Source: Auanema rhodensis
Lineage: Eukaryota > Animalia > Nematoda
NCBI GenBank assembly: GCA_964057225.1
Contig: OZ059895.1
Coordinates: 15,748,001 to 15,812,000, forward strand
DNA: 64,000 bases
Direction of reading: 5' to 3'
In this document: piece by piece, positions 10,225-56,530 of the stretch
How positions within the stretch are numbered: position 1 is the stretch's first letter
Layout: each line of letters begins with the position of its first letter
Notes under the pieces: model-generated
What the model saw: the letters and a program-made list of their open reading frames with translations, nothing else
What the model was told of the DNA's origin: nothing
Database searches by the model: none
Program-made: the position numbers and the translations under genes

Positions 10225-13200
10225 ATGCAATATGTGGGGAAGTATTGTGTTTGTGTTTGTGTGTTGTGTTTCTCTTTTGAAAAATTTTCTTTTTTTTCAA
10301 ACTTATTCCAAATTCAAGCTTTAAGCTTTTGTTCATCAAAATATTATATTGATTATCCATTGAATGATAAAGATATTCGTGAACTAAAGTTCTATTTTGA
10401 AAAGTAAAATCAAGAATCAACACAACATGCACAAGTAATAACTAGAAAGTTCAATAATAGTTTCAAAGAATAATAAATATATTTGCCAACTCAATTGAAT
10501 TGAAGAAATTCGATCCTAATGTGAGTTTGGAAGATGCGCTCATTTCTATATTTCACACAACGAATGCTGCTCCAAATTTTTCTTTATTCAACAATAACAA
10601 GAGGTAAACTTGATTATACAACCATATTTAAAGTATAATAAATACAAAAAACTATTTTCAGCTGTCACACCAACTCATGAACTTAAAGAAGACATTATTA
10701 AGAGGGAATATGTTGCAGATATAAGACCAACCCTCAAGCCAGATGATGTGACTACCGTAATCATAGAACATGAGAAATATTTTAATAATTCCATAATAGG
10801 TTACAATTGTTCCTAACAAGTTCATTTTGCTGGTGATGGATCAACAGCAGGAAACTATTCGTTTTGCCCAGGAATTTATGATGGTTCGTTACCTTACTGT
10901 ATAAAAGGATATTAAGCTATTCCCTGCTAGACAGCAGTTTTCAGAACTAATGTTTTCTTTTGTGGGAGTAGATTTGAATTTAATATAACGACAACGTTGA
11001 ATACTACCTGTTCTTTACTTCTTATCCATTTTTTTACATCTGAAAAGAACTCAGAAAAAGAATATTTTTTTAAAACATTACAACGACTTTTGCAATATTT
11101 ATAAACTCGGTTCAATTTTCAATTATTTCTTTCCTTTTCGCAACTTTTATTGCTGATAAATTGGTCCCCCAGCATAGTCACGTATTGTCTTTGGAGCGAA
11201 TGGTTTTCATAACAATAATGATTAAAAGTTAAACATGACAAAGTATTTCTTCAACAACATCACATGAGAGCCATGTGGTAAAGTTGGGTTGCTTGATCGA
11301 TCATGTTCCGATTTCTTACCAAATGAACTTTAAATACACCGACTTTTACCAGTCCCGGCTGCGGATGTATAAAAGTTTTGCGCGACGAAAGTGCGTTTTT
11401 AGTAAGGAATGCCACTGATAAGATTTAAGAAGCTCACGTATTCAGTTAATTATTTGCTTTTTCCCATAAGCTTTTCTTTGCAAAACAATAGCAATAATTC
11501 CATTATCTAAATCTGGCAATAAACTTGACAGCATAGCAATCGTCACTGTAACCCCTTTTCTTTTTATTTTCTCCATGATACATATATTCGCCTAATTGAA
11601 ATTTGTCATGCTCTATCTTTCAATCAACACATAATCTGGGTCGAATGTCCGGCTTCCGAACTAAGATTTTGCTGATTTCAGACATGGGTAGATCCGCATC
11701 TAACATGGAATCGCAGCTCATATGGGTATGGTAGAGATTGGATAAAGATTCCTGAAACATTTGTTTGGACCCCAGACGTGATTTTTGAATCAGCGTACGT
11801 ATGAAGTACTTTGAAGAAACAAAAATTATGCGAAGAAGAAAGACAAGGAGAATATCTGTATTAAAGTGAAATAGCCGGTTTTCTCGACATTGTCTAAGCT
11901 CTCTCTTTCTCTCCCTCTCAGTCACCACCACAGTGATGCTTCAGCGAAAATTTTGATAAGAAGCGTAACTGCATTAAAAAGATAACTAATAATACAGCTT
12001 TCTTATCATATGCTTCAGAATTGATAAAACCGAGATGATACCGCTTGTTCACCGCATGATAGATTTAAAGTATGATGGAACGTTACGCCAATCGAACCCT
12101 TCTGTGGTTAGTGAAATAAAACTAAAATAAACAATATATAAATTTGTCAAAGCGTACTTAGATACATTATCATCGAAGAGTATAGATAAAAATCTTTTTG
12201 TTTTTAAAAAACTTATTTGATTGATCTCTATCACGTTTATGTAGATGGAATTGCCTTGTAATTTGCGCATCCAGGATTTTCCGTTTGATGTACAGATATG
12301 CAGCGTGAGCGTGGGTGCGAAAACTAAATAAGCTAAAGATTCGATGAACTCGGTTCAGGTTCTTGGAACTTTGACAACACAGAAATCATAATGAATACAT
12401 CATCCAGACATTTTTTGCCCGAGGAAGATCGTTTTGAGGTTTTCCACAAGATTTAGTGCTTAATCTCACAAAAGGCTGATTTCCAGGGCAATAGCGAATG
12501 GGATTTGGAGAGCATTGAAGCTATTGATGAGAAGTCCGTCGATCCATTCACAGTAATCTTTGATCTTAAGCTGTTCATGCAACAACAACTCTTTTTTTCA
12601 GAAAAAATTATACTCTTCTATAAAATATAAAATTAAATTAAAACGGAAACCGGTGTATTATGTGCTTGTCATACAGGTTTCTTTATCATTTTTTTTCTAT
12701 CAAAAAATTAACGATTTTTAGGCACCGACCTTCATAGTGTCAACCTTAACAATTTTTGGCCTTTTTACTCCATTTAGTCAGGGAAACCTAAGAAGAGAAA
12801 AGGTCCAGAATCCTCGATTAAAACAACATTGCTTTCTCATTATAGGTTACATTGGGATTGAATATGTTCGTCTCCATCTCTATGATGTTAAACCTTGTGT
12901 CTAGTATGATGCCCAAGGCCTCTCGATTGCCATTGCTAGGTTTTAAAAACAAGAGTACCATATCATATAACTTGTTTGAAGGAAATTACATATTAGCGGA
13001 AATTTTTGTATGCGGATCTGGAGTTCTTGTTTCAATTTTAATAATTACATTACATCATAGATGTCACACACGAGCACTGAACCCACCTAATTGGTAATTC
13101 ATAAGCAATCCACAAACAAACTTTAACTTACATGTTTAAAGGCTTCTCCGAATTATATTTCTACGTTGCTTCAAACAAAAGAAAAAATGCAGCAACAATA

Positions 13201-18300: not shown

Positions 18301-19891
18301 GCTATGGCTTATGAATTGGATGATACGGCCATGAATTATCTGTATCCTGCATCTAGACATTGGACTCCTTTCCAAGTATTTGTTTAGAAATCCATGTTAA
18401 ACTATGTTTTGTTTTATTATAGAAAACTCAATTGATAACCATGGCTCATCAAAATGGTAAAAACTGGAATCTCATTGCTGAAACGATGATTGATCGGAGT
18501 GCAGCCGAATGCCGATCTTATTTTATACTTTTGGATAGAAGAAGGCCCAGATTTGATTGGGATCCTAATCCTAAAGTTCTGAAGAGTTTATTTGAAGGGG
18601 AGAAAACGTACGTTCAACATGACATTTAGATATTTTTAATCTGATATCTACAGGGAAGAAACAACTATGGAGGAGGATTCGCAAGACGTCCCTGAAGATG
18701 GTGCTCAATTGTCGCAAGAACATCTCGCTGTAAAAAATGAAGAATCTCGAGAACTTTCGCCTGAAATCGTTCCTGTTCAGGCGACTTCTCCGGTAGTTGC
18801 CGATTCAAAACCGAAAGCACAGAAAACTGAAGAGCCGCAACCAGAAGTTGCCACTGAGAATTCAAAAAGCGCTTTGAATATGCCTGTTCCTGAAGCTTCC
18901 ATACCTGGTGCAGGATCTCTTACTATGGGAACTCCTATGAGGCCAGCGTCTGCTACTCTTGCCGATGGAGTTTCTTCGAAAACTCAATCAATTACTCCAA
19001 CTCTTTCACAGTCACAGCCCCAATCCAAGGCTCAAACTCCTCTACCAATTCCCATTTCTCAGGTGCTACAATCTCAAAATTCGGCACAATTGCAACTTCA
19101 AGCTCAACTTCAAGCAGCGCATGCTCAAGCTCATGCTCAAGCGCAGGCCCATGCTCAAGCTCAGGCACAAGCTCAGGCACAAGCTCAGGCACAAGCTCAG
19201 GCACAAGCTCAGGCTCAAGCTCAAGCTCAGGCTCAAGCTCAGGCTCAAGCTCAGGCTCAAACGCAGGCACAAACTCAGGCACCAAATCCCTCTCAACTAC
19301 ATACCCCAACTCAGCAGCACATTCAAACTCATTTACAAACTCAGGGTCAAGCTCAGGTTCAAACGCAGGTTCAACCGCAAGCACAGTCTCAAGCGCAAAT
19401 CCAAATTCAAAATAAGGCTCCAGCACAGACCCTACAGCATTCTCTGCAACTTGGACACCCCCTTCTCCAGGCACATCAATCACCATTTCAACAACACCTT
19501 CAAGCCCAACAACAACAACAACAGCAGCAACAGCAACCGAATGTGGTACTCACTCAACCGTCAACCATATCACAGTCCTCTGTTACTACTGCTCCTGTGT
19601 CCTCTTTACCGTCCACATCCGGATATGCTGGAATACCTGGAATTTCTTCTAACGCTCTTGCAGCTATGTTCCCCGGGGGTGTTAATGCTGCAACCCTTCA
19701 GCAATACGCTGTGAGTGATTTATATTGTTTCAATCTATATTTGTTTATTTAGACCATCTTGCAGCAAGCCGGTGGAAGTAACATTGCTCCTCAACTCCTT
19801 GGAGATTACGGAGCTTTTCTTTCTGGCGCACTTAACCACCAGCAGCAACAGCAGCAACATCAACAACAACAGCAACAACAGCAACAACAGC

Positions 19892-19923
<32 letters not shown>

Positions 19924-20553
19924 ATTAATCCTCAGGTAATTTTTTGTATTTTATTTTGTAAATTATCACTTGTTTAGGATTTATTGAGAAATTTGGATAA
20001 ATTTGGAACCCGTGATGTTAACGCTGTTCTTGCTGTTCTACAACAACAGCAGCAAGTACAACAAGCTCAGCAAGTTCAGCAAGCTGTTGCGGTTGGTTTT
20101 GTAAAGAACTTTCTTATTTATATTCTGTTTTCAGAAAGGTAATTTGAACACAAATGCCATTGTGGAGTCCATTATTGCACAGTATAGCAAGTACTCTGAT
20201 CAAGGTATATAGTGTAACATCAATTATGAAATATATGAAAGTGTTTGTTTAAGATTTGGACACAATATTCAGCAAATGTACGGATCCGACAACCAAAGTA
20301 CTTCTACAAATCGTAATGGAACGTAGAAAAACTACTGCTAATCAACTAGCTCAGCAACAATTCCAAGCCAATTCTCTACAGCAAGCCTTTTTGCAACAAC
20401 AGCAGCACCAGCAATCTGAACTTATGAAACAGCAACAAGCTGAACTTTTGAAGCAGCAACAAGCTGAACTTTTGAAACAACAAGCTGAACTCTTGAAACA
20501 ACAGCAAATTAAACAAATGCAAAAACAGCAGGAGCTGATCAAGCAACAGCAAC

Positions 20554-20587
<34 letters not shown>

Positions 20588-23051
20588 ACAACAACAACAA
20601 ATGGTATGAATTATAATTATTAGAGATTAGTAAAGGACTTTCTTCAGATTGCTCAGCAATTAAAGCAGCAACAGTTATACCAAAATATGAGAACTACTCA
20701 GATGTCTCTCAGTGCTCAAGGCCTAATCCCCCAAGTTTCTACCGCTGTTAGTACAAGTGGTGATGCACGTGCTGATATGCAAGACCTCCAGGTAGATTTA
20801 AAGGTTTTTAAGAAACTATTTAAATACTAATTAAGAAGAAGTATACTGAGTTGTTCAAACAAGCTCAACAAAACCAACAGGTTCAACAGATCCAACAAGC
20901 TCAGCAAGCTCAACAGGCTCAGCAAGCTCAACAGGCTCAAGCTCAAGCGCAGGCACAAGCTCAAGCACAGGCACAGGCACAAGCACAGGCGCAAGCACAA
21001 GCACAAGCACAAGCACAAGCACAGGCACAGGCGCAACAAGTCCAGCAAGCACAGCTTCAGCTTCGTAGCTATGTTTTACAACAACAGATGAAAGTTCAAG
21101 AAGCAACTCAATTACAAGAAGAACATGATACAGTGAGAGCTTTTTTTCTGATAATTACATAATTTTCTCTTTTTAGTTATCTAAAAAAATTGATGAAATT
21201 GCTGAAAATCTTCAGCGAATTGAAAATGACGAAAGAAGCTTAGCTGCTGCTAAAAAGGTTCTCAACCTATATATTTGATTTGTACTAAACTCTTCGATAT
21301 TAAGCAATATGAAAGCATTGCTCCATGGTCAATGTCGCCAGAATTCACTCGAGGAAAAAATGAAGTTAATGATCAAATCAAGATGCATGCTATGAATAGG
21401 CTGACAATGCAAACAAGACTCGCCGAACTAAGAAATACGTTAGTTATCTCTCTCTTTTCTATAATTTTGACTCATGTTTTTTATCAATTTTAGACGCGAA
21501 AAGGTGCGACAACGCATTGTCCAAAATAGGGCGACTTTGGAATTAGCCAGTAGCCTTTCAAGTCCCGCTGCTGCTGCTGCAGCTGTTGCAGCTACTTCAC
21601 TTTCCAGTAAAGACTTTGTTTCTAAGATGCAAGGAGCTCCAACTAATTACTCAGTAATATCTTTTGGCTGATACGATATACTCATTTTTCTCCTGATTTC
21701 AGCAATTGATGGCTCAACAACTTCAACAACAACAACAGTTTCAACAACTTATTAGCCAGAGGTTTATGCAAGAAGCTGCGAAGGTACTTTTCAATATACT
21801 AGAAAGACTGTATTGAATCTTTTCAGTCTCAACCCACTACATCTATTACAACCAAACAACATGATCATGCTAAACAGGTCAATAATATCGTAGATAAGGT
21901 GAATGCTACTGCCGTTACTTCTATGATAATTTACCCTATTTCTCTATATAGGTTTTGAACGAAGAACTCTTCGTCAACCATTCTCCAACATCATCATATA
22001 CTCAACAGCCATCTGATACTGTTAAACGAAAATCAGGATTAGAGACCATTTGCTTGCCATCAGCTCCTATCCAACATCGTCATCCTTTGACTGCTCCTGC
22101 TCAAAGAAGGATGCCTACCCCTCCTCGCACGGTTTGCCAGCATTCGGTACCTTTATCCATTTTCTATATTTCAGAACTCACGAAGTATCACTGGAACTCC
22201 ACTGACAATCTCCACATCAAATCATTCTGGCAATCATTCAGGTTCATCAACAGTTCAGGTTTACTTCCATACTCTAGATATTCAATATCAATTTGTTCTC
22301 AGAATTCACCCAGACCCTCTTTATCAAATGGTGTTCCTAATCGAAGTACCGGTCCCGTTAAGCCTCCAATTCTTACTGGCTCAGCACCTTCTGCTTCAGT
22401 AATATCATCGGCCATTTCTCACATGGTTTGTCTAAATTACTTTTAATTCTTGTAACATTTACTCTTGCTTTAGAATCGAACTGCTTCACCATTCATGATG
22501 TCTTCTCAAACAGCTACCTCTGTTTCTTCAATACCTACCTCTTCTGCTCTAGCTGGGATTTCCTCTGTTAATAGTCCAGGTTCAGCTAAATCTGTACCTA
22601 ACCAAGCTCCACCCCCTCCACCACCTCATCGTCCCACTCCTCCTCCTCCGCCGCCTTCAGCTTCGGTCCAGGAAACTAAGGTCGAATCTTCTTCACACGC
22701 TGACTTCGAACCTCTATCCCCGGATGATAGCACTTCAAATGTTGAAAATGCTGCTCCTTCGAGCTCATTAATACAAGAAAAGCAAAAAACTGCTTCTGAA
22801 GGTACTAGTTGAACTTTGCATGTCCCACAACATAGATGCCTTTTTCAGAATCTCGTGTGTTCAGTTGTTTGGATCTTGATTGGAACGGTCCACCAATTAC
22901 TGCCAATGGTGGTACCCCTTCGAATGGAAATCAAAATGTTTCAACATCTACTGCAAACCCTTTCCAAATGGTTGGACTAATGCTTCCAGTTGATCCTTCA
23001 GCTCCTACCGCACCCCCTCAATTCGAGCCTTTATCCGATGACGAGAGCTAA
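15364..23051 (+). CDS. gei-8: NCoR/SMRT-family nuclear receptor co-repressor (GEI-8-like), many exons; exact start codon uncertain
   Basis: SANT1 [44 protein letters not shown]; SANT2 ...[25 protein letters not shown]; long Q/AQ-rich region; C-terminal [10 protein letters not shown] matching the NCoR/SMRT terminal LSD motif. Confidence 0.88.
19121..21040 (+). repeat. Coding low-complexity repeats in gei-8: two (AQ)n tracts and several poly-Q tracts
   Basis: gctcaggcacaa-type repeats at ~19121-19280 and ~20900-21040; (caa/cag)n at ~19508, ~19840-19923 and ~20544-20600. Confidence 0.95.
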
Positions 23052-24014
23052 ATTTTGGTACATTTAAGCTTTTTCTTTCTTTTGGGTTATTTTTGTTTTC
23101 ATTCTCTCTGTGATATCAGTGTGTACACATGATCTCTCCATAGGTTTGCAGAGTTCTACAGTTTTTTACTCTTTTACGCTGTCAGACAATGCATAGTGTT
23201 AACACATTGTATTTATGCTGGTTCTAACCTTACTTGACCCGGTTAATCAGTAAGGTGTTATTTGTATCTCGTTGTCTTTATTTAGTGAACAGTGAATTTA
23301 GCAATTTCATGTATTGTATCAATCCCAATCTACATTATTCATCTCATTTTTAAGTGTTGTGTTCCTTGTTTATATTTTGTCTCTCAGCGTTTTCGCCAAC
23401 TTTAGTGTTCATCTTTACCAGGAATATACTATAGAAGAAGTATAAATGGTGTGCTGTAAATAATATCTGTTCTGTTTGTTACTTTCTTTCTCTCGTTTCG
23501 TCTTTTTATCGCTCTCTTTCTTCTTTTGGCTGTATGTCTATCTGTTTTTCAGTTCAATTTATGATTCGAATGACTGCAAGTTCAATCATTTTCAATTTAT
23601 TTTCTCTATTTCTAAGCTTTATGTTAGACCAGTGAACCATTTTATATCCAAGTATATCCGATCAACATTGAATTTCTTGACCCCAGTTGATATTAACGTA
23701 CTTGATGAGACTTATAAAGTTTACTAGAAAACTTATAGTATATATACATGAGTTACCACATATAAAGAGACATCAGAGCATATAATGAACAGAACTAAAC
23801 GATACGATCAATCATGTTGAAGAAAATCATGATATTTTCATTATTAATGCAACTACTATATACGATATTCCATGAGTAAACGCACAGAATCTATGTAGAA
23901 AGATAGGTGTAGGTGTAGGAAAACTTTCGTTTCATTATTATGAAATTGACTCAAGATTATACGGTTTATGGACCCCTGTATGTAATACGGGAAACCAATA
24001 TATGATCAAGTTTC

Positions 24015-24204
24015 ATTAGGTTTGTTAAGATTGAGGGGGACTGTCTTTGGCAGTTGGAGAAGAGCTGGTTAGCACTTCTCGTTGGGGTGAGGTTCTGGCC
24101 CTCGGGATTCTTCGGAGTTCCTAGGACCGAAGACTTCCAAGCCCGGAACCTCCCCCCACCGGGGAAATATGTTTAAATTTTTGGAAAAGCATCTAATTAG
24201 GTGC
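24015..24204 (+). ncRNA. Putative Sm-class snRNA-like RNA, type A (also at ~24335-24524, 24655-24844, 24975-25164, 25294-25483, 25613-25802, 25932-26121); 5' end inferred
   Basis: GC-rich stems ACTGTC/GGCAGT, GAGAAG-GCT/AGC-CTTCTC, TGGGG-GAGGTTCTGG/CCGGAACCTC-CCCCA and GGGATTC-TTCG-GAGTTCC (cUUCGg loop); single-stranded AATTTTTGG Sm site at 24176-24184; terminal hairpin GCATCT-AATT-AGGTGC. G-U pairs define the + strand. Confidence 0.65.
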
Positions 24205-26252
24205 AACAATTCTCGATTTATCATTTTGAAAACTTATTGTAAAACTTTCGTTTCATCATTATGAAATTGACTCAAGATTATACGGTTAATAGCCCCTGTA
24301 TGTAATACGGGAAACCAATATATGATCAAGTTTCATTAGGTTTGTTAAGATTGAGGGGGACTGTCTTTGGCAGTTGGAGAAGAGCTGGTTAGCACTTCTC
24401 GTTGGGGTGAGGTTCTGGCCCTCGGGATTTTTCGGAGTTCCTAGGACCGAAGACTTCCAAGCCCGGAACCTCCCCCCACCGGGGAAATATGTTTAAATTT
24501 TTGGAAAAGCATCTAATTAGGTGCAACAATTCTCGATTTATCATTTTGAAAACTTATTGTAAAACTTTCGTTTCATCATTATGAAATTGACTCAAGATTA
24601 TACGGTTAATAGCCCCTGTATGTAATACGGGAAACCAATATATGATCAAGTTTCATTAGGTTTGTTAAGATTGAGGGGGACTGTCTTTGGCAGTTGGAGA
24701 AGAGCTGGTTAGCACTTCTCGTTGGGGTGAGGTTCTGGCCCTCGGGATTCTTCGGAGTTCCTAGGACCGAAGACTTCCAAGCCCGGAACCTCCCCCCACC
24801 GGGGAAATATGTTTAAATTTTTGGAAAAGCATCTAATTAGGTGCAACAATTCTTGATTTATCATTTGAAAACTTATTGTAAAACTTTCGTTTCATCATTA
24901 TGAAATTGACTCAAGATTATACGGTTTATGGACCCCTGTATGTAATACGGGAAACCAATATATGATCAAGTTTCATTAGGTTTGTTAAGATTGAGGGGGA
25001 CTGTCTTTGGCAGTTGGAGAAGAGCTGGTTAGCACTTCTCGTTGGGGTGAGGTTCTGGCCCTCGGGATTCTTCGGAGTTCCTAGGACCGAAGACTTCCAA
25101 GCCCGGAACCTCCCCCCACCGGGGAAATATGTTTAAATTTTTGGAAAAGCATCTAATTAGGTGCAACAATTCTTGATTTATCATTTGAAAACTTATTGTA
25201 AAACTTTCGTTTCATCATTATGAAATTGACTCAAGATTATACGGTTAATAGCCCCTGTATGTAATACGGGAAACCAATATATGATCAAGTTTCATTAGGT
25301 TTGTTAAGATTGAGGGGGACTGTCTTTGGCAGTTGGAGAAGAGCTGGTTAGCACTTCTCGTTGGGGTGAGGTTCTGGCCCTCGGGATTCTTCGGAGTTCC
25401 TAGGACCGAAGACTTCCAAGCCCGGAACCTCCCCCCACCGGGGAAATATGTTTAAATTTTTGGAAAAGCATCTAATTAGGTGCAACAATTCTTGATTTAT
25501 CATTTGAAAACTTATTGTAAAACTTTCGTTTCATCATTATGAAATTGACTCAAGATTATACGGTTAATAGCCCCTGTATGTAATACGGGAAACCAATATA
25601 TGATCAAGTTTCATTAGGTTTGTTAAGATTGAGGGGGACTGTCTTTGGCAGTTGGAGAAGAGCTGGTTAGCACTTCTCGTTGGGGTGAGGTTCTGGCCCT
25701 CGGGATTCTTCGGAGTTCCTAGGACCGAAGACTTCCAAGCCCGGAACCTCCCCCCACCGGGGAAATATGTTTAAATTTTTGGAAAAGCATCTAATTAGGT
25801 GCAACAATTCTTGATTTATCATTTGAAAACTTATTGTAAAACTTTCGTTTCATCATTATGAAATTGACTCAAGATTATACGGTTAATAGCCCCTGTATGT
25901 AATACGGGAAACCAATATATGATCAAGTTTCATTAGGTTTGTTAAGATTGAGGGGGACTGTCTTTGGCAGTTGGAGAAGAGCTGGTTAGCACTTCTCGTT
26001 GGGGTGAGGTTCTGGCCCTCGGGATTTTTCGGAGTTCCTAGGACCGAAGACTTCCAAGCCCGGAACCTCCCCCCACCGGGGAAATATGTTTCAATTTTTG
26101 GAAAAGCATCTAATTAGATGCAACAATTCTCGATTTATCATTTTGAAAACTTATTGTAAAACTTTCGTTTCATCATTATGAAATTGACTCAAGATTATAC
26201 GGTTTATGGACCCCTGTATGTAATACGGGAAACCAATATATGATCAAGTTTC

Positions 26253-26415
26253 ACTCTAAATATCTTTAACTTTCCCTATATATGAGTATATTATGGGGAA
26301 GCCCAGGGATCGCCCTCAGTTGGGTGTAGGTTGCTAAGCCCCGGGGTTTTTCCTTTCCCGTGGGGGGCGCTCCCTGTGCTTCGTTTATTTTTTGGAAAAG
26401 CATCTAATTAGGTGC
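26253..26415 (+). ncRNA. Putative Sm-class snRNA-like RNA, type B (divergent 8th unit)
   Basis: Same upstream flank and same terminal hairpin; Sm-like ATTTTTTGG at 26387-26395; different body folding as TTCCCTATATAT/ATATTATGGGGAA and GAAGC-CAGGGA-CGCCCTCA/TGGGGGGCG-TCCCTG-GCTTC. Confidence 0.6.
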
Positions 26416-26490
26416 AATAATTCTTGATTTATCATTTTGAAATTAGCTTATATCATGTATATTTATTAGGTGAAACAGTATTGTAACGAG

Positions 26491-27978
26491 TTATCGTTGA
26501 TATGTGTGATGGCAATGCATGAGAAGTAGCTTGTAGTCGACGACTGATTGGTTTAGAAGCTGAACAAGTTTGTTATTATAGTTGTCTTCAAAGAAATCAA
26601 ACTTACTCATTGTAAAATATTGTTTTGGATTGTATTCGAGACACAATTTGTAAATTCCTTGACGAATTGCTCGATTAAGAATAATATAGGCAAAAGGTGG
26701 AAGACCTAAATCATTGAACATTCATTGAATGATGAAGAAAATTAGTAGCACTTGTTGCTAACTGATACAAAAGTCCAGTAAATTTCTGTATGATAGCAGG
26801 ACATTCGAAAAAAAAGTTGAATACATGTAAAGAGGCGGCCATATTGCTTATGGTTACTGTAGCTAAGCATTGGCAAAAAAGCTGAAAAGAGACTAAAGTT
26901 GGTTATTGATGTGGAGAAGGTGAAGACCATAAATTGACGTCGTCTATCTATCATTGATCCAAAATTCTTTTCTAAGTGTTTGGTTATATTGATACACAGA
27001 ATAATACTTAATGTGCTATTACATGAAAGAAGTATAGTGTTGTTGTATACAAGCATATGACCAAAGTACTGCAAAAACGATTTGTTTGTACTTCTCGCAT
27101 GGAATATAGGCTTGTACCAGCCACCAGATATGATACTCACTTGAGATGAAGCATTTTCATAGATCTGTGGGTCCCATAAATCCACTCCACTATTTAGATC
27201 CAGTAGCACAGGTAATTCACAGCTCAAGCAGTAAAGCCCGATTGATACAGGAATACACATAAGGATAGGTGTGTATTTTCCATTAAAGATATCTGTCCAT
27301 AGTTTGTTTCTATAAGGTTTGTATTGAAAACTTGAAGCTTAGAGCTTACTTGGGTGAATTCAATTCAACAAATCGATTCATGATCAGAATGGAAGAGAGT
27401 AAGGAGGTTGTTATCCATGCACCTGAAAGATGAAATCGATGGTATAAGCAAAGATGGAGTTTGAAGTATACTTGAAGCGAAAAGGCCAACGACATAAAGT
27501 GTATTTGGATAATCACAGAATACAATTCCATAATAGTAGATAAATCCTTAAAAATTCGAATTGTTGATAGAAAGATTAGAGAATATACCGTATGTTATGC
27601 AACTGTAAACTGTTCCACACATATCACAGAACGATATAACTACCATAATCTTATATGCTGTACATACAAAGTTGGTAGGTTCTAGCATTACCTTAACGCA
27701 GAGAATGAAGAGAATCTGAATCTTGCAAGTAATTTAAGTTGGCCACCATGTTGATTCAGCTCACTTCACTCACAACACCGAACACGAAAGAACATGTTCC
27801 ATAATGTATTTCGGGTTCAAAGATATTCATCTCGATCATCTTAGGAGTTCGTGCACTTGAAAGGTGAAAAGCTTAGAGCTTGAACATGACACACAAGACT
27901 CTGGGAAAGAGCAATGACTGACCTGCAGTTGTACAGAGGATCGTTAGTGATACTACCATATCGGATGAGTCGTTCCAT
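26491..27978 (-). CDS. Serpentine chemoreceptor (7TM GPCR), Srt-like family
   Basis: Spliced MERLIRYGSITNDPLYNCSARTP..., TAYKIMVVISFCD, GIVFCDYPNTLYVVG, WITTSLLSSILIMNRFVEL, LWDP, LPPFAYIILNRAIR; these are Srt-type motifs. Confidence 0.82.
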
Positions 27979-29977
27979 GAATGAATAGTTAAGGTAGGAA
28001 ATCAGATGGATATCAGGAGAAGCACAGATGGATTAATATGAAAAACTGAGACAACATTCTGAAAATAGCTATTGCTAGAAGTACAAAAATGAAAATTAAA
28101 CACTCAAGCTATTCTAAGAATTATTGAAGATATTTATAAAAGATTATAAAACAAACAATATAATTGTACTTGATTATATGTACTAATTTCTTGACGGTTT
28201 CATTATTTAAATATACATTGTTTCAATAGTTTGATTCAATTTTTCATGTTAATATTCCAATATTTTTGCTTTTCATTGTACGTGCTTCTATGTAATTTAT
28301 GCTCATATCTTCTGATAATAACACATTGTATCCAGTAATTTATTCGAATATAGGAAATGCTAAAACCACAAATTTCTTAAATATCCTATTCCGATAGTTG
28401 GTAACCTTTATATATCTTCATGTATCCACTGATTACCGTTTTGAGAGGCTCAAGCTTAGACTTATTATTGCCGGGGGGTGGCAAGAGGCTACAGATGAAT
28501 CAATGAAGCACTTGCCTAAGTTTCCATGAGGATGCTACGTAATCGCATTCAAACAACGTTGTCTTTACTGTCTTAACTGTATTTTATTTTGTATATTATT
28601 GCTTAATTCATTAATATATAATTTAAAAAAAAATAAATTTATAATATAAAATATTTAATTTTTATGCTGTCGATGAAAAAAACACTCGGCGGCATTGAAA
28701 AAACTAGAAATCTGACTTAGAAAAAGATCACAATAAAAATAAAAATTTGTTAATAACATGTTCTTAAGAATATGGGATGTGGGAGGAGGCAGGGCTGGTG
28801 GGAAGCTGTTGTTGGTTTGTAAGGTATTGGGTGTGCAGGGTCGGTGGGGGCTGGTAGAAATACGACACATAATCTATAATATTATTGAAATTATAAGAAT
28901 AATACAAAAAAGATGATAACAGATTAAGCTGAATAATGAAAATTCAAGATATATTTCATATTTGTGTAAATATAATTGATGATGTACATAGAAAGATAAA
29001 AAATATTGTTAAGACACAAATATAGGAGATGAGAAAATGATTATTCTAACTATATGAAATAGTAATTTCTTGATATAATTACATTATGCTGTTCACAACC
29101 GGCATCAGAAGAATATGAATATTCATATGTATATTGATTATTTGATTTTGAAAAAGAAATATCTTCATCAGATATTCAAAAGGCATCTTATGTATATCTT
29201 TTCGTTTCTCAAAATATTAATTAGAAAATTAAGAAATGATTGCTATGGATGGAAGACAAACAAACAAACCAAAAAACACAAAAAACTGAGCAAGTAGTGT
29301 TGATGAAAGGCGATCGTTAGACACACAGATATACAACATTGAGATTGTAAGTATTCATAGATGTGTAAATGCATTTTGATACCAGAGATAGACGTATGTT
29401 AGAGAGCATCAGATGAATATCTAGTTGCTGCTGCTAGCTGTGTCTTCTGTAACTAAAATTCTAGAGCATAAACAAGAATTTTCGGGTAGAAATGATATAT
29501 TTCCGTCTAAGTTCCCGGTATGTTTACTTATGCTACTTAGACATCTATCAAACCTAATCATGCTGCTATAGAACAGATATATCAATATGATATTCAGGTT
29601 GGAAAGGAGGGAGGGAGGAAGGGAGGGAGGGAGAGGAAGGGAAGTGCTTTTCTATCAGAGTTTATGAGGTATATATACGGTCTTTTAGATTATAGTCGAA
29701 TGATTCAGAAAGGCATTTGATATAGAAGTCGAAGTGTTTTGAGTCACGTTCAGTCGGTTAAGTCTGATTATCCCGCTATCATATGTAAGGGCACTTGCGT
29801 AAAAGCTTGAGAATATAAATGAAATTTTCTCATTGAATGAGGAAAATGAAGAAAAAAAACGAATATTGGATTTGGAAAAGAGTATAGGAAGAGAAAGGGA
29901 CACTGAGGCTAGAACCGTTTTAGTCTATGACAGAGCAGATGTGGATACTTCATTGGAGGAAAGCTCATCCGGCATGG

Positions 29978-44790
<14,813 letters not shown>

Positions 44791-45115
44791 AACATTAAAG
44801 GATCTACTCTATGCAGATTGAAACTGTGACTATGGTACCCGAATATAGTCTGAAAAGAGAAGAATCAACGATATGTACATACATGTCTATGATGTGAGCT
44901 AGTAGTAAAGAAAAGTAGGTGAAACATGATGAAAGATTCAATTAAGATGAGAAAAAGACAACGAAATTGGAAAGATAAACCTGTAAATGAAAGAAAATAT
45001 CGCACAAATATGAAATTATTTGTAGGATGATGAACGAGAAATACGGAAGCTACTTCAGTTCCAAAAGAGAAGAATATATTCAGAGGTAAATGGAGGACTT
45101 GAAGAGGAAGAGAAT

Positions 45116-45155
<40 letters not shown>

Positions 45156-45483
45156 TGGACATAGAGAGAAAGAGGTGGACACAGAGGGCATAATTACATG
45201 AAAGAGTGAAAGAAGAACATGAATAAGGTGAATGGAAGAAAAAATCGATGAGAAAACGAGAACTGAACGACGAGGCTGTCGGTAGGAAGATGTCTGAACG
45301 AAGGAGATGTGGATGAGAGAATTAAGGATAGACTGAATCGAAAAGGTGTACAACAACGATTTCCTTGCTATTTAGTGAATTTATAGAATTTTAACACACG
45401 TCAAGATGTCAAATATGCAAGAACGGTGAAGGGGGCAGTATGTTAGTGAGGATGACAAGAGGAACGGGGAGGGAGAGAGAGAT

Positions 45484-45520
<37 letters not shown>

Positions 45521-45880
45521 ACGAGAGAGAGACAGTAAGTTACTTTAACCTTCAGTTTTTTTTTCTTTTTGAGGAAAAAAACTTTTCATTTAGAATGTGC
45601 GAAAGAAGAGATTAGATAGCCTGTCTCTGTCAACTGTGCTCTAAAGCAAAAGCATGTTCCAATATAGTGAAAATGAAAAATGAAATACAAATAAAAAAGT
45701 TTTTTTAGTTCATTGTATCTTATGGAGAAGAGGAAAATGATATATATAAACATGGAAAATAGGAATAATTGATTGATTCAATCATACAATATGTGGTAAT
45801 AGATGGACAGTAAACGACGACGACACAGACAGTAGACAGTACAGCTTACAGAAAATTCGGAGAGACAAAGAGAGAGTGAG

Positions 45881-45919
<39 letters not shown>

Positions 45920-47142
45920 ATGCAAAATAATGTTACAAAAATTGTTTTTTTTAAGTGAGTGATAACGGAACAGAACATGATTCATTCACTGGTTCATGTA
46001 TGATGCACCCAGTGCCACGAGCTGCTGCGCACAAAATCAAAGCGAGAACGCAAGAATCAGAGAAGCAGGTCAACTAAGAAGACATAACATCAAAAATCGA
46101 TTGAAGTTACGGTTGACAAGCAGAAAATCAGAAATTGAAAGAGAGAGAGAGAGGGGTGAAGATATGCTTAAGGAATTATCATTGACAAACTTAGCAACAG
46201 ACAACACATGCCGGAACTATCTTGTTGTGAATACTTGGAATGAGATTACAGTCAAAGGGAGTTAAGTAGAAGTCATTGTGCATCAAGTTTGTTCTTCACA
46301 CTATACGATAACAGAACAACATTCTTTCCCTGTAAGAGGGAGAGAAAGAAAGAGAGAGAGAGAGAGAAATAGAGAGAGAGAGAGAGAGAAATGATGTGAG
46401 ATAAGGGTTTTGAAAATTATTGCAAACGAATATCAATAATATGATTATACACATAGAAACAGTGATAGGTTGTTGCTAGCTGAACGATGAAGGAAGTTCA
46501 AAACTAGATGATTTAAGTCAAATTAAGGAATGGGACGAAATGATTTGAGTACAATACAAATCAGGCTAACTCTACTAGTAGAACTAATTTGTTTCGTAGC
46601 AAATATGATGTGAATACGATAACAACAAAAATGTATTGAAGGTAGAGAGAGAAAGAGAGAGAGAGGTGGGAGGGAGAGGAGAGAGAGAAAGAGAGGGAGA
46701 TATATGAGAAAAGTAGGAGAAAGTAGGAGAAAGTAGATAATACATTATAAAATCACATTGAATATGAAATGAAGTGATGTTAAATGACCAAAATTATAAT
46801 GAAAATATGTAGTCGGCTAGGTTAATGTGTTAATCCAAACGTTAGGCCAAATCAAAGAAACACTAATAATAACGAAAAGCGAAAACGGGACAGATAGATA
46901 TCTTGAGAGAGAGAGAGAGAGAGAGAAAACAGAAAAATTGATGTACCCATTGAAAAGAGCGTAAGAGGGCGTAGTCAATATACGAAGAGAAAAGAGTTTA
47001 TTATATTCTAAGTGAAGCATGATAAACATAACATCGAATGGTATTATCGAATTGTATTAAAGTATAAGAAGACTATGACAGGAGGATTCATGAATGATCC
47101 AATGAAAAATTATAAGAAGTGAGAAAACGACGATATAGAGGG

Positions 47143-47206
<64 letters not shown>

Positions 47207-50200
47207 ATAGGAAAGAATTGAGGCATTTGAAGGCAATACTGGAATATATATTTGTAGCACATGAAAAGGCTGCATGATGACGTCAAATATTGGAAGAAAA
47301 AAGTGAAAAGAAAAAAGAGGATTAGACAACTAATATAACCATTATTAGTTTTGTTAATGAATAGAATAACAACAATAACAACAATAATAAATTTAATAGA
47401 AAAAATGATAAATCATCCATGAATTGAAGTAAGAATGGTTAGGAAGTCGTGAGAAATGAAATAAAGAGGCTTATCTGCTAGATGGACAGAAACATATTGA
47501 CATAGAAACATTGAAACCGAGAGATAGTTGCAAACAAAAATAAATAAAATGAATGGCGATGACCGGGTGGCTGTGAGAAGCCCGGAAACTAGACTGCACA
47601 ATCTACCGGACCTTCTGCTTTTCCACATAAAAGGAGTGAAAAGAAGGTGAGCTGAACAGTGCTATTAGACAACGATGACAATCGTCGTCGCAAAAGCCAT
47701 GAGAAGAAGGATCGACGGCTAGTCGATGTGGGTGAGAGAGAGAGCAAGAGGTGCAGAGCGCTGAGAAAGAGCTTTTGGAATGAATGGACCTAGAGAAGGC
47801 CAAGGAGAGTGGAGTGGAATACAAGACGTCTAGAAAGGGTAACGACCGAACAAGAGACAAAATGCGAAAAAAACAGAATAAACAAAGCATAGTGTGTGAA
47901 ACAGTATGAAAACGCTAGAGGGTTCAAGATAACGAAAAAGGTGAAGCTGGAGTCGTAAAAGCTGATTCGCCAAACAATTCAGCTGAAGGCTTGAGGTACC
48001 AAGAAACTGACAACATCAAGCCAATAGCAATAGGGTATAGAGCAAAGGTAAGCTGTTGATAAGCAACATGAAAGATATATACTCTAAGGCTCTTCCACTG
48101 TAATAGCTATGACTACTGCAAAGATTAGGTTGGATATGCCGATCAAATATTCTAAAAATCATAAAAACTTAACTATTACAAAATCAATATAAGTTATACT
48201 TGCAAACGATACACAAAGCTATAGAGGTCATACACAAAAGCAAACGAAACCATGAAGATGACGATTGAAAAGAGTTTTTTTCTCATATTTATGACTACCT
48301 TACACATCACACATTTTGAATTTTTCAATATGCGACGAAATACAAGAATATTCTCAAGAACAGCAGAAAGATGTTGTTAAATCATTGAAATTCAGAGGGA
48401 GGGAGAAGGGGGAGACGACAATTTTTTTTTGTTTGGAATTTCAGTCTTACATGTTCATCAATGAAATTGACAAACTACATGCATAGTGTTATGCATATAC
48501 ATCGTGAATCGTGAAGAAAAAGTGAAATTTTTTTTTCTTTTTGATTTGGAACACAAATCAAGGATAGCTGTACATGATGAAGAAGAACAATAACATCATT
48601 CGTATCTTGTTGTACTGTTTCGTGACAATATGAAGAAGAAAGAGAAAAAAAGCTGAGAAAAAAAACATTAAACTATGATTACGTGAAATGAAATTTCTCA
48701 ATACAATATAGTTGTGGGATTAAAATGGTTTTATGAAGAGATATTACATATATATATATAGAAATAGTTAGATATATAGATCAAAGTATTATGTGAATGT
48801 ATGTTTTTCAGTAGGACATCATCGCACTGACGAATAACTTGAATGAAACACTTCACGTAAAAATGAATGATATGTGGTTGGTATGAAGAAGAAGAAGAAG
48901 ATGAAGAAGAAAACGTTTTTTTAGACGGATTGACAGAAACATCGTTGTAGGTAGTAGTTGTAGGTTAGAATTCCTGGTTGTCCTGAATTCATAGTTGTCT
49001 GTCATACTTACTAACTTTTTCTTTTTTTTTTTAGAAGTTCTAGTTTTCTGGTCGACATAACATGAAAATGGATAGAGGACAGTTGAAAGAGAGGAGAAAC
49101 ACGAAACACGAAGAGAAAAGCTGAAGCAAGAGAGAGAGAGAGAGAGGGAAAGAGAGAAAGATTGAAAGGTAAATTGAGTATGTGGTAGGAGATCACACCG
49201 AGAGAGAGAAAAAGATAGGTGAGCTTTGCATTGGTGAAATGCGAGATGATGACAGAGAGCGTTAGCTAAATGAAATATATTATAACAGAGAAAAAGCTTA
49301 ATATAATAGTTAAAAACATAAATCAATAAAAAAAACAAAAAAAAACCAAAAAATAGCTCATGAATCAATTGAATTGATAGTCCCGAAAGTTATGAATAAT
49401 TTGCAAGAAAAAAAAGATTACAGAGACTGAACTGATTAGTGGGTGAAAACATGCTATTGGCCTCTCTTCTCTCACAATCTTCTTCTACCTCTACTCAATA
49501 AGTCGTAAGAAAACACAGTTAAAGCTATTGTATGCTAAAACAACAACTACGTAAAAATGAAAAAAATGAGTAAAAGTAGATGCATAAACATGTCAACAAG
49601 CTCCAAATATCATAAGTTTTGAAGTAAGTTGCCAATCCTGGTATGTATGCTTGAGATAAAGAGAGAGAGAGAGAGGGAGAGAGAGAGAGAGAGAAAGCAG
49701 TAAGAGAGAAAAACAGTTGTCACTTCATGCAGATACGAAACGAAGGAAAATGAAAACATGACGCATACGCAAACTACTCCATCTGTCGCTTCTCATATGC
49801 TTAGTCCCAGTTGACCATGGTGAGGAGTTTAGAGCAAGGCATCTAGCTTACCAGCAGCCACGTGTGCTTCTTTCATACATCGCAACTAGCATTCATTGTC
49901 GTCAAAGCAAATGATGCTGATGATGAGGATGATGATGCTGCTGTTGATGAAATTGTCATATCTGACAATTGATGTGAATATGACAAAGTGATAATCACAA
50001 AATACAATGAGAAAGAGCATAATGACGGAATGCCAGCTGCTAATCGGCAATCAACTCCTCCCCCTCCTCTACCAAGCTAGAAAAGAAGAGCAATTGAGGG
50101 ACAAGGTAATTTGAGAATTAGCAACAGCTTGGGAGGGAGGGGGGGGGGGATTTTCATTGAGCTTCTTTGACCATCAAAAACATTCATTTAGTACTTTATC

Positions 50201-52418
50201 TTGTTCGTTTCAAATTGTAACATCGCTCACAGAGCATAAAGACACAAAACCATCTGACAAACAAGATCAAATAAACGGCAATATAGATGAAGTCAATTAC
50301 GACAGGAAGGTCAATGAGAAAAAAGCCTATTAAAGCTAAAATAGCTGAGTTAGCAATGTAGTATCAAGTCCGTACTATAAGCAGTTTATGTGTATATGTG
50401 TCTGTGTCTCTGTGTGTGTGTGAATAAGTATAGAAAAATATACAATTTGAGATGAGAAAGACAAGAAAAGCGGACATCGTCAAGCTAGAATCCAGTATTT
50501 AATTATATCTCACCAATTAATGGCTATATGAATTTTACAGCCGACAACGAGGGCATGAATATGCGACGATAGATACAGCTTAGCATGCTTAGGCAACGCT
50601 ATAACGCTCTATCCGAATTCGCATGCGTTTAAAATCTCAAAAGTAATAAAAAATTATAAAATGTGAAGAAAGAACAGACAAACGGAAAAGTGAAAAGATG
50701 AACGTAAAATAGCAGCAAGTGAAGAATGAGCGAAAAATGAAGGCAGAAGACGGCAACAGCGAAAAGCTCAAAAAGACAATTCGTTGGTGAGATATGTATG
50801 CAGCTCAAAAGATATAAATCTTTAAAAAAAAGAGAAAATAGAAGAAAAAAATGCTAAAAGCGAACACACACTGCTTTAATATTAATGTAGATTCTATGAG
50901 CTAAAACAATGTGCTGTGGTATTTCCTCGTTAGCCTTCTTTGAATTATCCTGTTTCTCTTTCTCTCTCCTTCTCTCTCTCTCTCTGTGTCTTCTGTGGTC
51001 TTCATTCTTTAACTGTTAGTCTGTTTGACAAAAGCTACATGGCAAAAACAGAAGATCATTAGATGGAAATTTAGTTATTAGACGGACTCTCGACTGGGTA
51101 GAAACTAAACAATGCGGAGAAATAAGCTAAGCTACAGATTTCAATGTGCTGACGTTTTATGACAGAAATTACATTTCATCAGATAATTGAAGAAGCAGCT
51201 TTAAATTGGAAAACAGATTTACAAGCTATGCATGCATTCAAAAAGATTTTTGGCACAGACACGATGACAGTAAGAGATAAAGCAAGTTAAGGAAAGTGGG
51301 AAGAGCAGAACGATAAACAGATAACAAATCAGAATTAAGAGAAATATAATGATAAACAACTATATACTATACATATACATATATAGATATATAGATATAT
51401 ATGATCACATAATGTTCAAACTTCATGACCAACTTAGTACATATGATTCAGAACTGGGTTACAAGCTGCCACCTGAAGCATATTGAATTGCAATTTGGAT
51501 TCAACAGACATCAAATAATATTGAAACAATTTTAAGTGACCATAAAATAAAATAACATATAGTATAAGTAATATTAAATAGTAAATAGCATAGTTAACGA
51601 ATAATAGTTAACGATTTAGACGAATATACATACACATATATATGTATTGAATGCATAACTATATTAAGATATAGTAAAAAGGTCAAAGTGTGGGCATATA
51701 TGACAATGGCTATAAGATAGCAATGCTCATTCATCTTTGTCGAATCGAAAAACATTCGTAGACGACGGATTTCGACGTTTTAGCCGTTGCAGGCCTTTCA
51801 TTGGCACTGAGAGATAGCATCCAGCGACAACGCTGGTGAAGGCAACTAACTGAAGTCAATCGACGGCAACTATGCAAACTATAATGACAAAAGAAGATTC
51901 GTATTGACGTGTAAGATACATCTGTTTGCTATGATGTATGAACGAGATGAGGTATGGCTAACTTCCCTCTTCCAATTGTCTTTTTATTTAAACGAAGGTC
52001 AGGCTATATACACTTATGAGTAAATGTAGATGAATGAATGATGAGCATGAAGAAGACGATGACGGTATTAAGCTTGGAGGGGGGGGAAGGGAAGTTTGAG
52101 AAGTATTGGAACAACAACAAACAGCTCATTATGAAATATGTACGTATGTTTGTTGAAGGATTTGTAGCTGAACTACAAATTAGCGACCAAATAAGAAGAA
52201 AGCTAATGAAGATAGCTGTTTGACATTGAATAAAAGCTCTCACAAATGGCTGATGACCATAAACGAAAATTTAGTTGCATCGACATCAGGCTCAGTGATA
52301 ACTAGAAAATACGGGTTTTAAGTCATATCCATCTCAATCTCTGTATTCAATATCTATATAGGCAAGGACTAGCCGCAAAAACAACCAAGAGGAGAGATAT
52401 CGAGGAATTTACAAAGAT

Positions 52419-52477
<59 letters not shown>

Positions 52478-55400
52478 TGGAAAGACAGAGAGGTTGTAGA
52501 AAGAAAGAACAAGAACTAAAAGAGAAATGAAGAGGAATCAAGAGGTATCATAATGATGTATGCGTGTCATATAAAATCAAAGCTGTTGCGAATGTTATCG
52601 TTAAAGCATATACATCAACGTAACGATGACATGTAGCTGGCAAGTTCTCTTTTAGATAATTAATAATCATCAGCTAGATTCAGCTTTAAAGTCCAAAAGC
52701 TATGTATTATGCGTGAAGACCGGCCGATGTATCAACGCATATGACATGCTTATGTTCGATAGAAATACAGATTATTGCCTGAAGCGATAATGATGATGAC
52801 AAAGAAGCTTGAAGATGAACAAAAGAAATACAAATATAGCCACAACGCATATTCCTGATAAGCAAAGATCATCAACAACTTGACATCGATACGAACCGTT
52901 AAAATACATTTGAAAACAATGTTTAGATAATGAAACTCAAGCCAGTTCAAGATGATGATAAGACGGAGAGGAGAAGCCGACGAAAAGACATTTATCATCC
53001 AGATTAATGAAATAGTCATCTCAATGATCATATACGAGTTATATAAATACTAGAAAAATTGAATAACAAACAGCATCAAGTTGATATAGTAAGCATAGTA
53101 AGTAGCATGAGTAGGTATTAGCAGAATTTGTGCGATCATAGTTTTATGAATCTGGCACATACTGTGCAAATTCAATTGAGCATCATGTTTAGCTATAGGA
53201 TAACCTATGAACTTGTCTGTTATAATTCAGTTGCTTGTTCCATTTGTATTGTATTTGTTTGTTTGTTTGTCACTGCAAGAACGTTCTTCAACGAATAACA
53301 AAAAGGAAGACAGACAAGGAAGAGGAGAGGGGAAGAGGAGAGTCGAATAGTTATAGCAAAAGGATAGAAGGTCAGAAGCTATTTTCAAACCAATCAATAA
53401 TCAAAGAAAAAGGAAAAATAATAAAAATAATTTTTCACATAATCTGTATATAGATATGAATGAAGAAAGGCTGTATAAGTTTAATGATTTTTCATCAATG
53501 CATGTGTACATAACACTGAATTTAAGGTCAATAAGAATATTTGAGGGGTACAGTTAACGAAATAATGAAAATTGTGCTATTAACCTATAAAAACTTAGAA
53601 TCATGTGGTTGGAAAAAATTAAGACTATCTGAAATGAATAATCAAAGACAGACAGATTTTTACGATGATGATGATGATGATGATGATTGTATATGAAACT
53701 TAGAGAAGAATTGTAGAGATTCTGATCGGTGATCGGATGAAAATTCTCTTTCTCTTTTCCATTTTTTTTTATTTCAACTTGGTCAACTGATCGGTAGCGA
53801 GTTCGGATAAGCCGAACAAACAGATCTACAACGTGGGGGCAAAGAAAAGCATCAGATCGGCGGCGAGCTCAGATTCTCAAACAGTTCAACAGATGCTCAG
53901 AGCTATTTTCAATCGAGTACACACTGTTTCATTTATATTTTTAAAATCTTAAAATAAACTATGAACAAGAGACAAGTATTGATAATGTTTAATTGTATAA
54001 TGAGATATGAAGACATGCAATGATTATTATAGAATAATAGATAAATCATAGCAAGATGCTTATGTAAGCAGTGCAATTGAACAAATATGCAGGTTTTGAA
54101 GAAGAAGAAGAAGAAGAAAAAAAACTTGAACTTGAACTTTCTCTTCATATTACATGGGTGGGTGGGAGAAAAGGGGCACAGGAGGGAGACAGCATTTGAT
54201 GAAGAAAGTACAGAAGTGACGAACAATTATGGCGAACAGATGGTGTTAAACTAATGATAATGCTATGATGATAATGAAATGATGCTATAATCAGGATATA
54301 GATGACTAATATTCAACAAAAAAAAAACGATAAAAGGAAAGGAAAAGGAAGAAGATCAGCATTGCATCTGAATTCATTCACCCACCTCCCCTCCACATTC
54401 ACCCAACACCTACCGGGCCCAACTACATTTAACACAAAAAAAAGTGTTATTATTATCTTCATAAACAGTAATTGCTCATAGAGAAAAACAGATTGAAAAC
54501 TAAAGAGACAGAATAGATGAAAGGTGCACACATACACAGATACGACGACACAGACGTACACACACACACGTCGAAATTGTCAAATCGCTAGACTCCTCCA
54601 TATAGATGGGATAGAATCAATATTAGTGATGACCGAAATCGGCTTAAAGCAGTATAAGAGAAATGAGAGATGGAAAATGAGGCAGTATACTGATGAAGGG
54701 CACAGGAAATTGAGGAACAAGACAAGGAGGACGATGCAAATACTAAGATATGCAAACTGTATAAGGCGAGAGCAGTCAAAAACTGATTAGCGATGAATTA
54801 ATGGGCTCATATTTGGATAAGATGTTGCTGACATGTCTTCTGACGCTCAAGAAAGGAATGATAGAAAGAAAGAGAAAGAGAGGATTAAAGCAGGTAGAAA
54901 ATGCTGAAAATGCTGTTCTTGACGATGATGTTGAAGGCGTTCCTGCTGTATTGGTTGTAACGTGGAACATCTATGTATATGTTTGAAAGCAATTCACTAT
55001 TATGTTCATATCATGATAATACTGACAGTAATCATCATCATCATAAACATAGTTTCAAAAACGGGTTCTTAAAATGGCTATTGAGGACTTTCGGAAGAAG
55101 TCGAGAAAATTAAAGAGAGTGAGTGAGCGAGAGAGAAAGGAGAAAAGGAAAGAGACACAGAGAGAGAAAGAGAGAGAGAGAAAGGGAGAGAGAGAAAAGA
55201 GACTAAAACGTTCTTCTATCTACATAAGGTAGATGAAAACGTTATCTCAGAAATATATGTGTATGTAGGAGAAAGACGAACCGAATTCAATGAAAATTAA
55301 GGTCAGTAGATAGATACTTCTTCGTATTGCTAACCATCTCATTTCAACATAACACATTTCAAGAATGAAAAAGAAACAACATCGTACTTTGAAGCATGAA

Positions 55401-56474: not shown

Positions 56475-56530
<56 letters not shown>

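Follow-up and report, generated by a model that had tools for sequence, protein, structure and literature searches.

Is a tandem array of near-identical units in a nematode genome an inert satellite or a set of RNA genes? This question is raised by a locus of Auanema rhodensis that lies within a stretch of 64,000 nucleotides (hereafter the window; C3:15748001-15812000, on contig OZ059895.1). A preliminary description of the window had proposed that each unit encodes a structured RNA with an Sm site and a 3' stem-loop, and had favored a lineage-specific family of small nuclear ribonucleoprotein (snRNP) RNAs over an inert satellite. We analyzed the array, its neighborhood and the 181-Mb assembly of the species, to which all genome-wide counts and searches refer. 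Our results suggest that the repeated unit (type A), together with a second gene type (type B) at the 3' edge of the array, forms a lineage-specific family of Sm-class small nuclear RNA (snRNA) genes, built on a cassette like that of spliced-leader (SL) and SmY RNA genes and amplified like other snRNA genes. We give this reading about an even chance, and the family may have a role connected with (trans-)splicing. The preliminary description was incomplete: it had missed type B, a second cluster in inverted orientation, and the usual arrangement of snRNA genes in this genome, which is in tandem arrays.

Tandem Repeats Finder identified one tandem array at 23920-26253 with a period of 319, 7.3 copies and 98% matches. 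Unit alignment divided it into seven full units of 319-321 bp, with 10 variable columns in 321, and a partial eighth flank. The repeat itself cannot be due to chance. Its end had been placed at 26157, which is where unit 7 ends, but the partial eighth flank reaches 26253 and supplies type B with its promoter region. The RNA-like part of the type A unit has a GC content of 51%, and its core (up to the Sm-like word) 56%, compared with 28% in the spacer. Type A copies vary at 4 sites in the 178 nt of the RNA versus 6 sites in the 143 nt of spacer. The array and its predicted RNAs are as follows.

23920-26253, + strand: tandem array, seven full units plus a partial eighth flank (Tandem Repeats Finder and unit alignment)
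24030-24207, + strand: predicted type A RNA, copy 1, 178 nt; start predicted by distance from the promoter element, end assigned behind the terminal hairpin
24350-24527, + strand: predicted type A RNA, copy 2; a C to U change in the long helix gives an internal T5
24670-24847, + strand: predicted type A RNA, copy 3, the consensus copy used for folding; minimum free energy (MFE) -69.8 kcal/mol, z -2.89
24990-25167, + strand: predicted type A RNA, copy 4
25309-25486, + strand: predicted type A RNA, copy 5
25628-25805, + strand: predicted type A RNA, copy 6
25947-26124, + strand: predicted type A RNA, copy 7, with three private or shared variants
26268-26418, + strand: predicted type B RNA, 151 nt, with the same promoter flank and Sm-site/hairpin tail as type A

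To score promoter-like sequences, we built a matrix from the upstream regions of 17 distinct known snRNA-type genes of the same genome. These genes have in common a 17-nt element, with a consensus of about CACCCATATGnnATACG, that ends 36-49 nt before the start. In leave-one-out scoring the known genes reached 6.6-25.4 bits; 16 of the 17 scored 12.7-25.4 bits and SL1 scored 6.6 bits. Every A and B unit carries the word CCCCTGTATGTAATACG, which resembles this proximal sequence element (PSE), scores 10.0 bits, lies on the correct strand and ends 40 nt short of a purine bordering the GC-rich body. Its positions are given here.

24613-24629, + strand: PSE-like 17-mer CCCCTGTATGTAATACG of type A copy 3, 10.0 bits, ending 40 nt before the predicted +1
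23973, 24293, 24933, 25252, 25571 and 25890, + strand: the same word in the other type A units
26211, + strand: the same word upstream of type B

Because the element ends 40 nt before the purine, the predicted RNAs are 178 nt (type A, starting at AUUGAGGGGG) and 151 nt (type B, starting near AACUUUCCC) in length. For type A the predicted length is thus below the estimate of about 190-240 nt in the preliminary description. The best alignments of the type A promoter were those with the promoters of U2 (z 4.4) and U4 (z 3.8). The flank contains two TACGG words, and only the second is PSE-like; the first was rejected as the promoter element at -8.8 bits. Elsewhere in the window, the strongest PSE-like match is CCATACCCATATGAGCTGCGAT at 11710-11731 on the - strand (18 bits); the 300 nt downstream of it contain neither an Sm-like word nor an obvious folded RNA.

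The second gene-like signal is an Sm site close to the 3' end of each predicted RNA, followed by a short hairpin.

24816-24824, + strand: Sm-site consensus AAUUUUUGG of copy 3, at a constant offset across copies; matches the SL1, SmY, U5 and U4 sites
24829-24844, + strand: terminal 6-bp hairpin GCAUCU-AAUU-AGGUGC of copy 3, then AAC; laid out as in SL1, SmY and U5 3' ends
26387-26415, + strand: Sm-like site AUUUUUUGG and terminal hairpin of type B

Both AAUUUUUGG in type A and AUUUUUUGG in type B fit the Sm site RAUUUUUGG, in a form identical to the SmY, U5 and SL1 sites of this genome. At the 3' end of type A, 4 nt separate the Sm site from the 6-bp hairpin, which is followed by a 3-nt tail, and the same plan is found here in SL1, SmY and U5. 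By local similarity, the type A 3' module resembles that of SL1 (z 3.1-4.7) and that of one SmY gene (z 4.5). In the unconstrained MFE structure the U-run of the Sm site can pair weakly, and forcing it to be unpaired costs 1.9 kcal/mol. On both strands of the window (128 kb) there are 8 other Sm-like words and 21 other PSE-like matches. The co-occurrence of promoter element, Sm site and hairpin at gene-like spacing is specific, because 20 of these 21 matches have no Sm-like word in the 300 nt downstream, and the remaining one lacks the hairpin. The proposed architecture of an Sm site plus 3' stem-loop therefore agrees with the plan of nematode Sm-class snRNA genes, with the promoter element at the right distance.

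Folding and alignment also confirmed that each unit contains a GC-rich folded core, the Sm word and the 6-bp terminal hairpin. On the + strand, the type A fold consists of a pair of short hairpins and one long helix of 29 pairs, followed by AAUUUUUGG and the hairpin GCAUCU/AGGUGC. None of 200 shuffled sequences was as stable as this structure (MFE -69.8 kcal/mol, z -2.89). The - strand reached an MFE of -57.0 kcal/mol (z -2.25), and the + strand fold is better by 12.6-12.8 kcal/mol. Nine pairs of the type A fold are G-U pairs that are possible on the + strand alone (the preliminary description had called the stem mismatches mostly G-U), and the 12.8 kcal/mol gap fits their confinement to that strand. 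A domain capped by cUUCGg had also been described. That pairing is possible, but it is one of two alternatives at the tip of the long helix, and the MFE favors the other, UCUUCGG/CCGAAGA.

Three stem changes distinguish the type A copies. In copies 2 and 7 a C to U change converts a C-G pair of the long helix to U-G, and in copy 7 a G to A change in the terminal hairpin converts U-G to U-A; both had been listed before as variants that keep pairing, and both are real. The third is found in an eighth type A copy outside the window, where a U/C mismatch has become U-A. All three changes are one-sided, and pairing is kept or improved in each.

Type B has a GC-rich body distinct from that of type A and folds with an MFE of -58.3 kcal/mol (z -2.84). 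Its downstream flank is common to both types, and its body contains an internal T5. The two bodies are weakly alignable over a 40-nt stretch at equal distance from the predicted starts (z 3.2), with 13 of 1000 shuffles giving an equally good alignment. Thus, two different bodies occupy one promoter/3'-end cassette, and type B may be either paralogous to type A or a sharer of its cassette. Genome-wide there are eight copies of the type A body, seven in the array and one 35 kb upstream on the opposite strand, and three copies of the type B body; all are confined to about 40 kb. The upstream copies form an inverted B-A-B cluster at C3:15736688-15737472, 35 kb from the array (about 1120-1990 on the minus strand of the extracted piece L007). 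Of its two B copies, the outer one shows 100% identity to the B of the window. The inner one, the third copy, carries 17 changes in 154 aligned positions (89% identity), nearly all in the middle of the body. An open frame adjoining this cluster (about 2650-3186 of L007) looks by eye like a transposase type, with the motif ..GGPGKTVEIDETL..

How unusual is such an array in this genome? Whole-genome Rfam searches located canonical U1, U2, U4, U5 and U6 genes, genes of about 96 nt with the classical nematode SL1 leader (54-62 bits, cut-off 75) and, elsewhere in the genome, SmY-like genes (31-38 bits, cut-off 39). With the exception of the SmY candidates, all of these snRNA-type genes are in tandem arrays, with units of about 226 bp for U6, 252 bp for SL1, 371 bp for U5, 472-490 bp for U4, 727 bp for U1 and about 2.5 kb (2470 bp) for U2. 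Very large arrays of SL1, U6, U5, U4 and U1 lie at C3:6.74-7.10, C1:6.37-6.39, C8:10.43-10.53, C4:15.50-15.56 and C3:15.86-16.07 Mb, and U1 arrays are found 50-260 kb from the window. A 319-bp tandem unit is therefore normal packaging for an snRNA gene here, and the array is less odd than it would otherwise appear, because tandem amplification is the rule. Since the canonical and SmY-like genes are found elsewhere, the array is none of U1, U2, U4, U5, U6, SL1 or SmY; the preliminary description had already set U1, U2 and U5 aside. SL1 and SmY have been reported together for nematode clades III-V (PMC11229312). The SL1 units of A. rhodensis apparently have no 5S gene. In C. elegans, by contrast, SL1 units carry one.

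We then compared the units with known families. No part of the window matched an Rfam family at the gathering thresholds. In E-value mode the unit gave sub-threshold matches to U4atac (18.8-25.6 bits, cut-off 53) and mir-1261 (22 bits, cut-off 91), the latter rejected as noise, as were weak and unrelated matches to snR52 and CC0196 in the flanks. The SL1, SL2 and SmY models had no match on the unit at E values up to 10, and ARAGORN found no tRNA-like gene. Thus, the cmscan search that had been suggested as a check on novelty left the unit without a family to explain it, and U4atac was the best match. Full-text literature searches turned up no description of such an RNA.

Other resemblances did not hold up. 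Words similar to U6atac (GGUUAGCAC and GGCCCUCGGG) were dropped, since the U6atac model has no match on the unit and the genome yielded no U6atac above the cut-off among the 40-50 best first-look candidates. SL1-like leaders (GGUUUGUUAAGAUUGAG before A and CUUUAACUUUCCCUAUAUAUGAG in B) are no better than shuffled sequences (z 0.0-0.4). Type B contains CUAAGCC, 7 nt of the complement of TTAGGC, for which we estimate a chance expectation of about 5%; a telomerase template was rejected, as the word lies in a predicted helix of a multi-copy gene. The 5' end of B also resembles that of U1 (AACUUUCCCU versus AAACUUACCU), but U1 stem-loops are missing from the body and this reading was rejected.

Several observations weigh against the snRNA-gene reading. 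The PSE-like match of A and B is moderate, above SL1 but below 16 of the 17 known genes, and there are about 8-11 equally good chance matches in 128 kb (both strands). The type A copies are so nearly identical that purifying selection cannot be separated from recent duplication. A check for covariation within the array yielded no double compensatory change among type A copies, and the three stem variants, all one-sided, therefore carry no statistical weight. The divergent third B copy breaks five of the eight changed pairs of the B fold, and together with its 17 changes this indicates that it is probably decaying. Predicted duplexes between A and B, and of either RNA with U1, U2, U4, U5, U6, SL1 and SmY, were within the range of shuffled sequences (all z > -1.8). 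No homologue outside the genome was found in a metagenome scan with the 3' module word, whose one match was a chance hit in a bacterial coding sequence, or in one contig of a relative; this 10.6-kb nematode contig carries the neighboring kinase-like gene, has no A/B-like sequence and ends 1.1 kb past the gene. The public runs for the species (three, about 20 Mb each) provide no transcript evidence. A single matching contig of 165 nt spans promoter and core, as expected of genomic DNA, and because this sole match includes the promoter, the runs are uninformative on expression.

The main rival is a young and functionless tandem duplication, a nascent satellite or pseudogene array of a decayed SL/SmY-like cassette in which the promoter-like and Sm-like words are relics. 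We consider this unlikely on balance, though it deserves to be taken seriously. It accords with the selection left undemonstrated by near-identical copies, a PSE match weaker than in most real genes, the visible decay of one B copy and the lack of transcript evidence (in three small runs) or of an outside homologue; in addition, the family is limited to 8 A and 3 B copies within 40 kb, and this genome amplifies many things in tandem. However, the promoter element, its spacing, the Sm site and the hairpin are intact in all units, and two unrelated, strongly folding GC-rich bodies in one cassette are hard to derive by decay. The PSE score is lower still (6.6 bits) for SL1, which is a genuine and essential gene in this nematode, and a stable GC-rich core within a spacer of 28% GC is typical of RNA genes. 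An inert satellite would have neither gene-like signals nor strand-specific structure, whereas this array has promoter-like, Sm-like and hairpin modules at gene spacing and favors the + strand by about 13 kcal/mol. The preference of the preliminary description for a gene family over an inert satellite is partly supported, with silent duplication as its principal competitor. Its possible lineage-specific snRNP RNA family is likewise supported in part, by gene architecture, promoter match, genomic context and the lack of an Rfam family; covariation among the copies was not seen.

The remaining alternatives keep the units as genes but assign them to other classes. Transcription by RNA polymerase III, as for U6, stem-bulge or Y-RNA genes, would end in the T5-T6 run and leave a type A RNA of about 153 nt with a U-tail, from which the hairpin is excluded. 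Nematode U6 genes share the upstream element, as U6 does here, the putative Sm site includes T5 (A) or T6 (B), and a AATATATGA word is found about 33-26 nt before the predicted start. We nevertheless regard this class as improbable: the genome's own U6 has no TATA word at that place and ends in T9, and the full word AAUUUUUGGA with its spacer, hairpin and short tail copies the SL1/SmY/U5 plan beyond a bare T-run. Moreover, the internal T5 of the B body, also gained in A copies 2 and 7, would truncate polymerase III transcripts and appears to fit RNA polymerase II better. Still less probable are variant spliced-leader genes. In this reading the first hairpin of B would carry in its loop a GA|GUAUAU donor for a new leader, distinct from SL1 and SL2 and about 18 nt long, and A would be a donor-dead derivative. 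The 3' module is indeed SL1-like, UUGAG (A) and AUGAG (B) lie close to the predicted 5' ends, and the B loop has ..UGAGUAU.., much as SL1 has UUGAG|GUA. But the similarity of the leaders to SL1 is at shuffle level, the SL1, SL2 and SmY models are unmatched, A has GG rather than GU after UUGAG, and no nematode SL RNA comes close to either body in size. Finally, a highly divergent U4atac snRNA of the minor spliceosome is almost certainly the wrong answer. U4atac (RF00618) is the best Rfam match (model positions 1-132), and like A it has a 3' Sm site preceded by a GC-rich hairpin; A, however, has an extra 5' domain, with sixty-odd nucleotides 5' of the alignment, and the score, to which the Sm site and generic GC stems contribute most, is far under the 53-bit cut-off. 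No U12, U6atac or U4atac gene scored above its family cut-off genome-wide among the best 40-50 first-look candidates per family, so the match is best taken as noise and a minor-spliceosome identity is effectively refuted.

For A and B as Sm-class snRNA genes, the repeat, the fold, the motif matches with their spacing, the lack of an Rfam family and the genomic context are observed, and transcription, the type of polymerase, Sm binding and a splicing role are inferred in the following scheme. The PSE-like 17-mer, at about 58 to 42 nt upstream, would be bound by SNAPc, with RNA polymerase II starting near AUUGAGGGGG in A or AACUUUCCC in B. The transcript would be cut just past the terminal hairpin, and an Sm ring would form on AAUUUUUGG, which separates this hairpin from the folded body. 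The particle would then be cap-hypermethylated and re-enter the nucleus as an snRNP. Given the likeness of the 3' module to its SL1 and SmY counterparts, an SL/SmY-type gene cassette is the likeliest origin of the family, and the likeliest role would be that of an accessory particle in nematode (trans-)splicing. In a more specific version, which is improbable, such cassettes gave rise to a pair of new Sm snRNPs, A and B, that are lineage-specific and act in trans-splicing, either as SmY-like cofactors or with B as a new leader donor.

The closest known parallels are SmY and SL RNAs. SmY RNAs (RF01844) are nematode-specific Sm snRNAs needed for SL1 trans-splicing; they are about 75-80 nt in length, with two stem-loops around the Sm site and a conserved sequence in the first (PMC11229312). 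They resemble A and B in being restricted to nematodes, in having a PSE-type promoter and an Sm site with a terminal hairpin, in their multi-copy clustered genes and in lacking complementarity to splice sites. The ..GGYC..GACCC.. of the first SmY stem-loop, in contrast, is absent from A and B, which are longer (178 and 151 nt) and have three or more helices. SL1 and SL2 genes likewise share with A and B their tandem arrangement, a PSE promoter, the Sm site AAAUUUUGGAA with a hairpin ending in ..GCAAC, and a similar downstream flank. They differ in that A has neither the 22-nt leader nor a GU donor, the GA|GUAUAU donor in the hairpin loop of B is doubtful, and the A and B bodies are GC-rich and twice as long, as had been estimated. 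Deng et al. reportedly described, in Genome Res in 2006, C. elegans 'snlRNAs', which are snRNA-like orphan RNAs with the snRNA upstream motif; these are said to be mostly single-copy and shorter, which would set them apart from A and B.

The set of Sm-class snRNAs is small and ancient, and to our knowledge SmY was the last nematode addition to it. A further orphan pair, with two bodies in one promoter/Sm-site cassette and amplification like that of the canonical snRNA genes, would bear on the origin of snRNPs, and could be a live case of snRNP birth in which a new RNA body was swapped into the cassette. Such RNAs would also offer new particles to those who study nematode splicing. If the loci are silent, the array would still document an snRNA-type cassette on its way to becoming a satellite.

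The surroundings of the array provide some further observations. On the - strand, at about 27000-36700 of the window, are exons of a gene with ROC and death domains (DAP-kinase-like). Its exon at 31910-32281 has matches of 64-92% identity in other nematode assemblies, and a contig of a relative (L075) has a Death domain downstream. An exon neighboring the array has a named protein match in Brugia. On the other side, 18667-21030 contains a long open reading frame or exon rich in Q and A (AQAQ.., poly-Q), which is encoded by short CAA/GCT-type tandem repeats of periods 3-45. From 37000 to 56600, AG/GA dinucleotide microsatellites are very dense, and GC and AT skew are strongly positive over about 20 kb.

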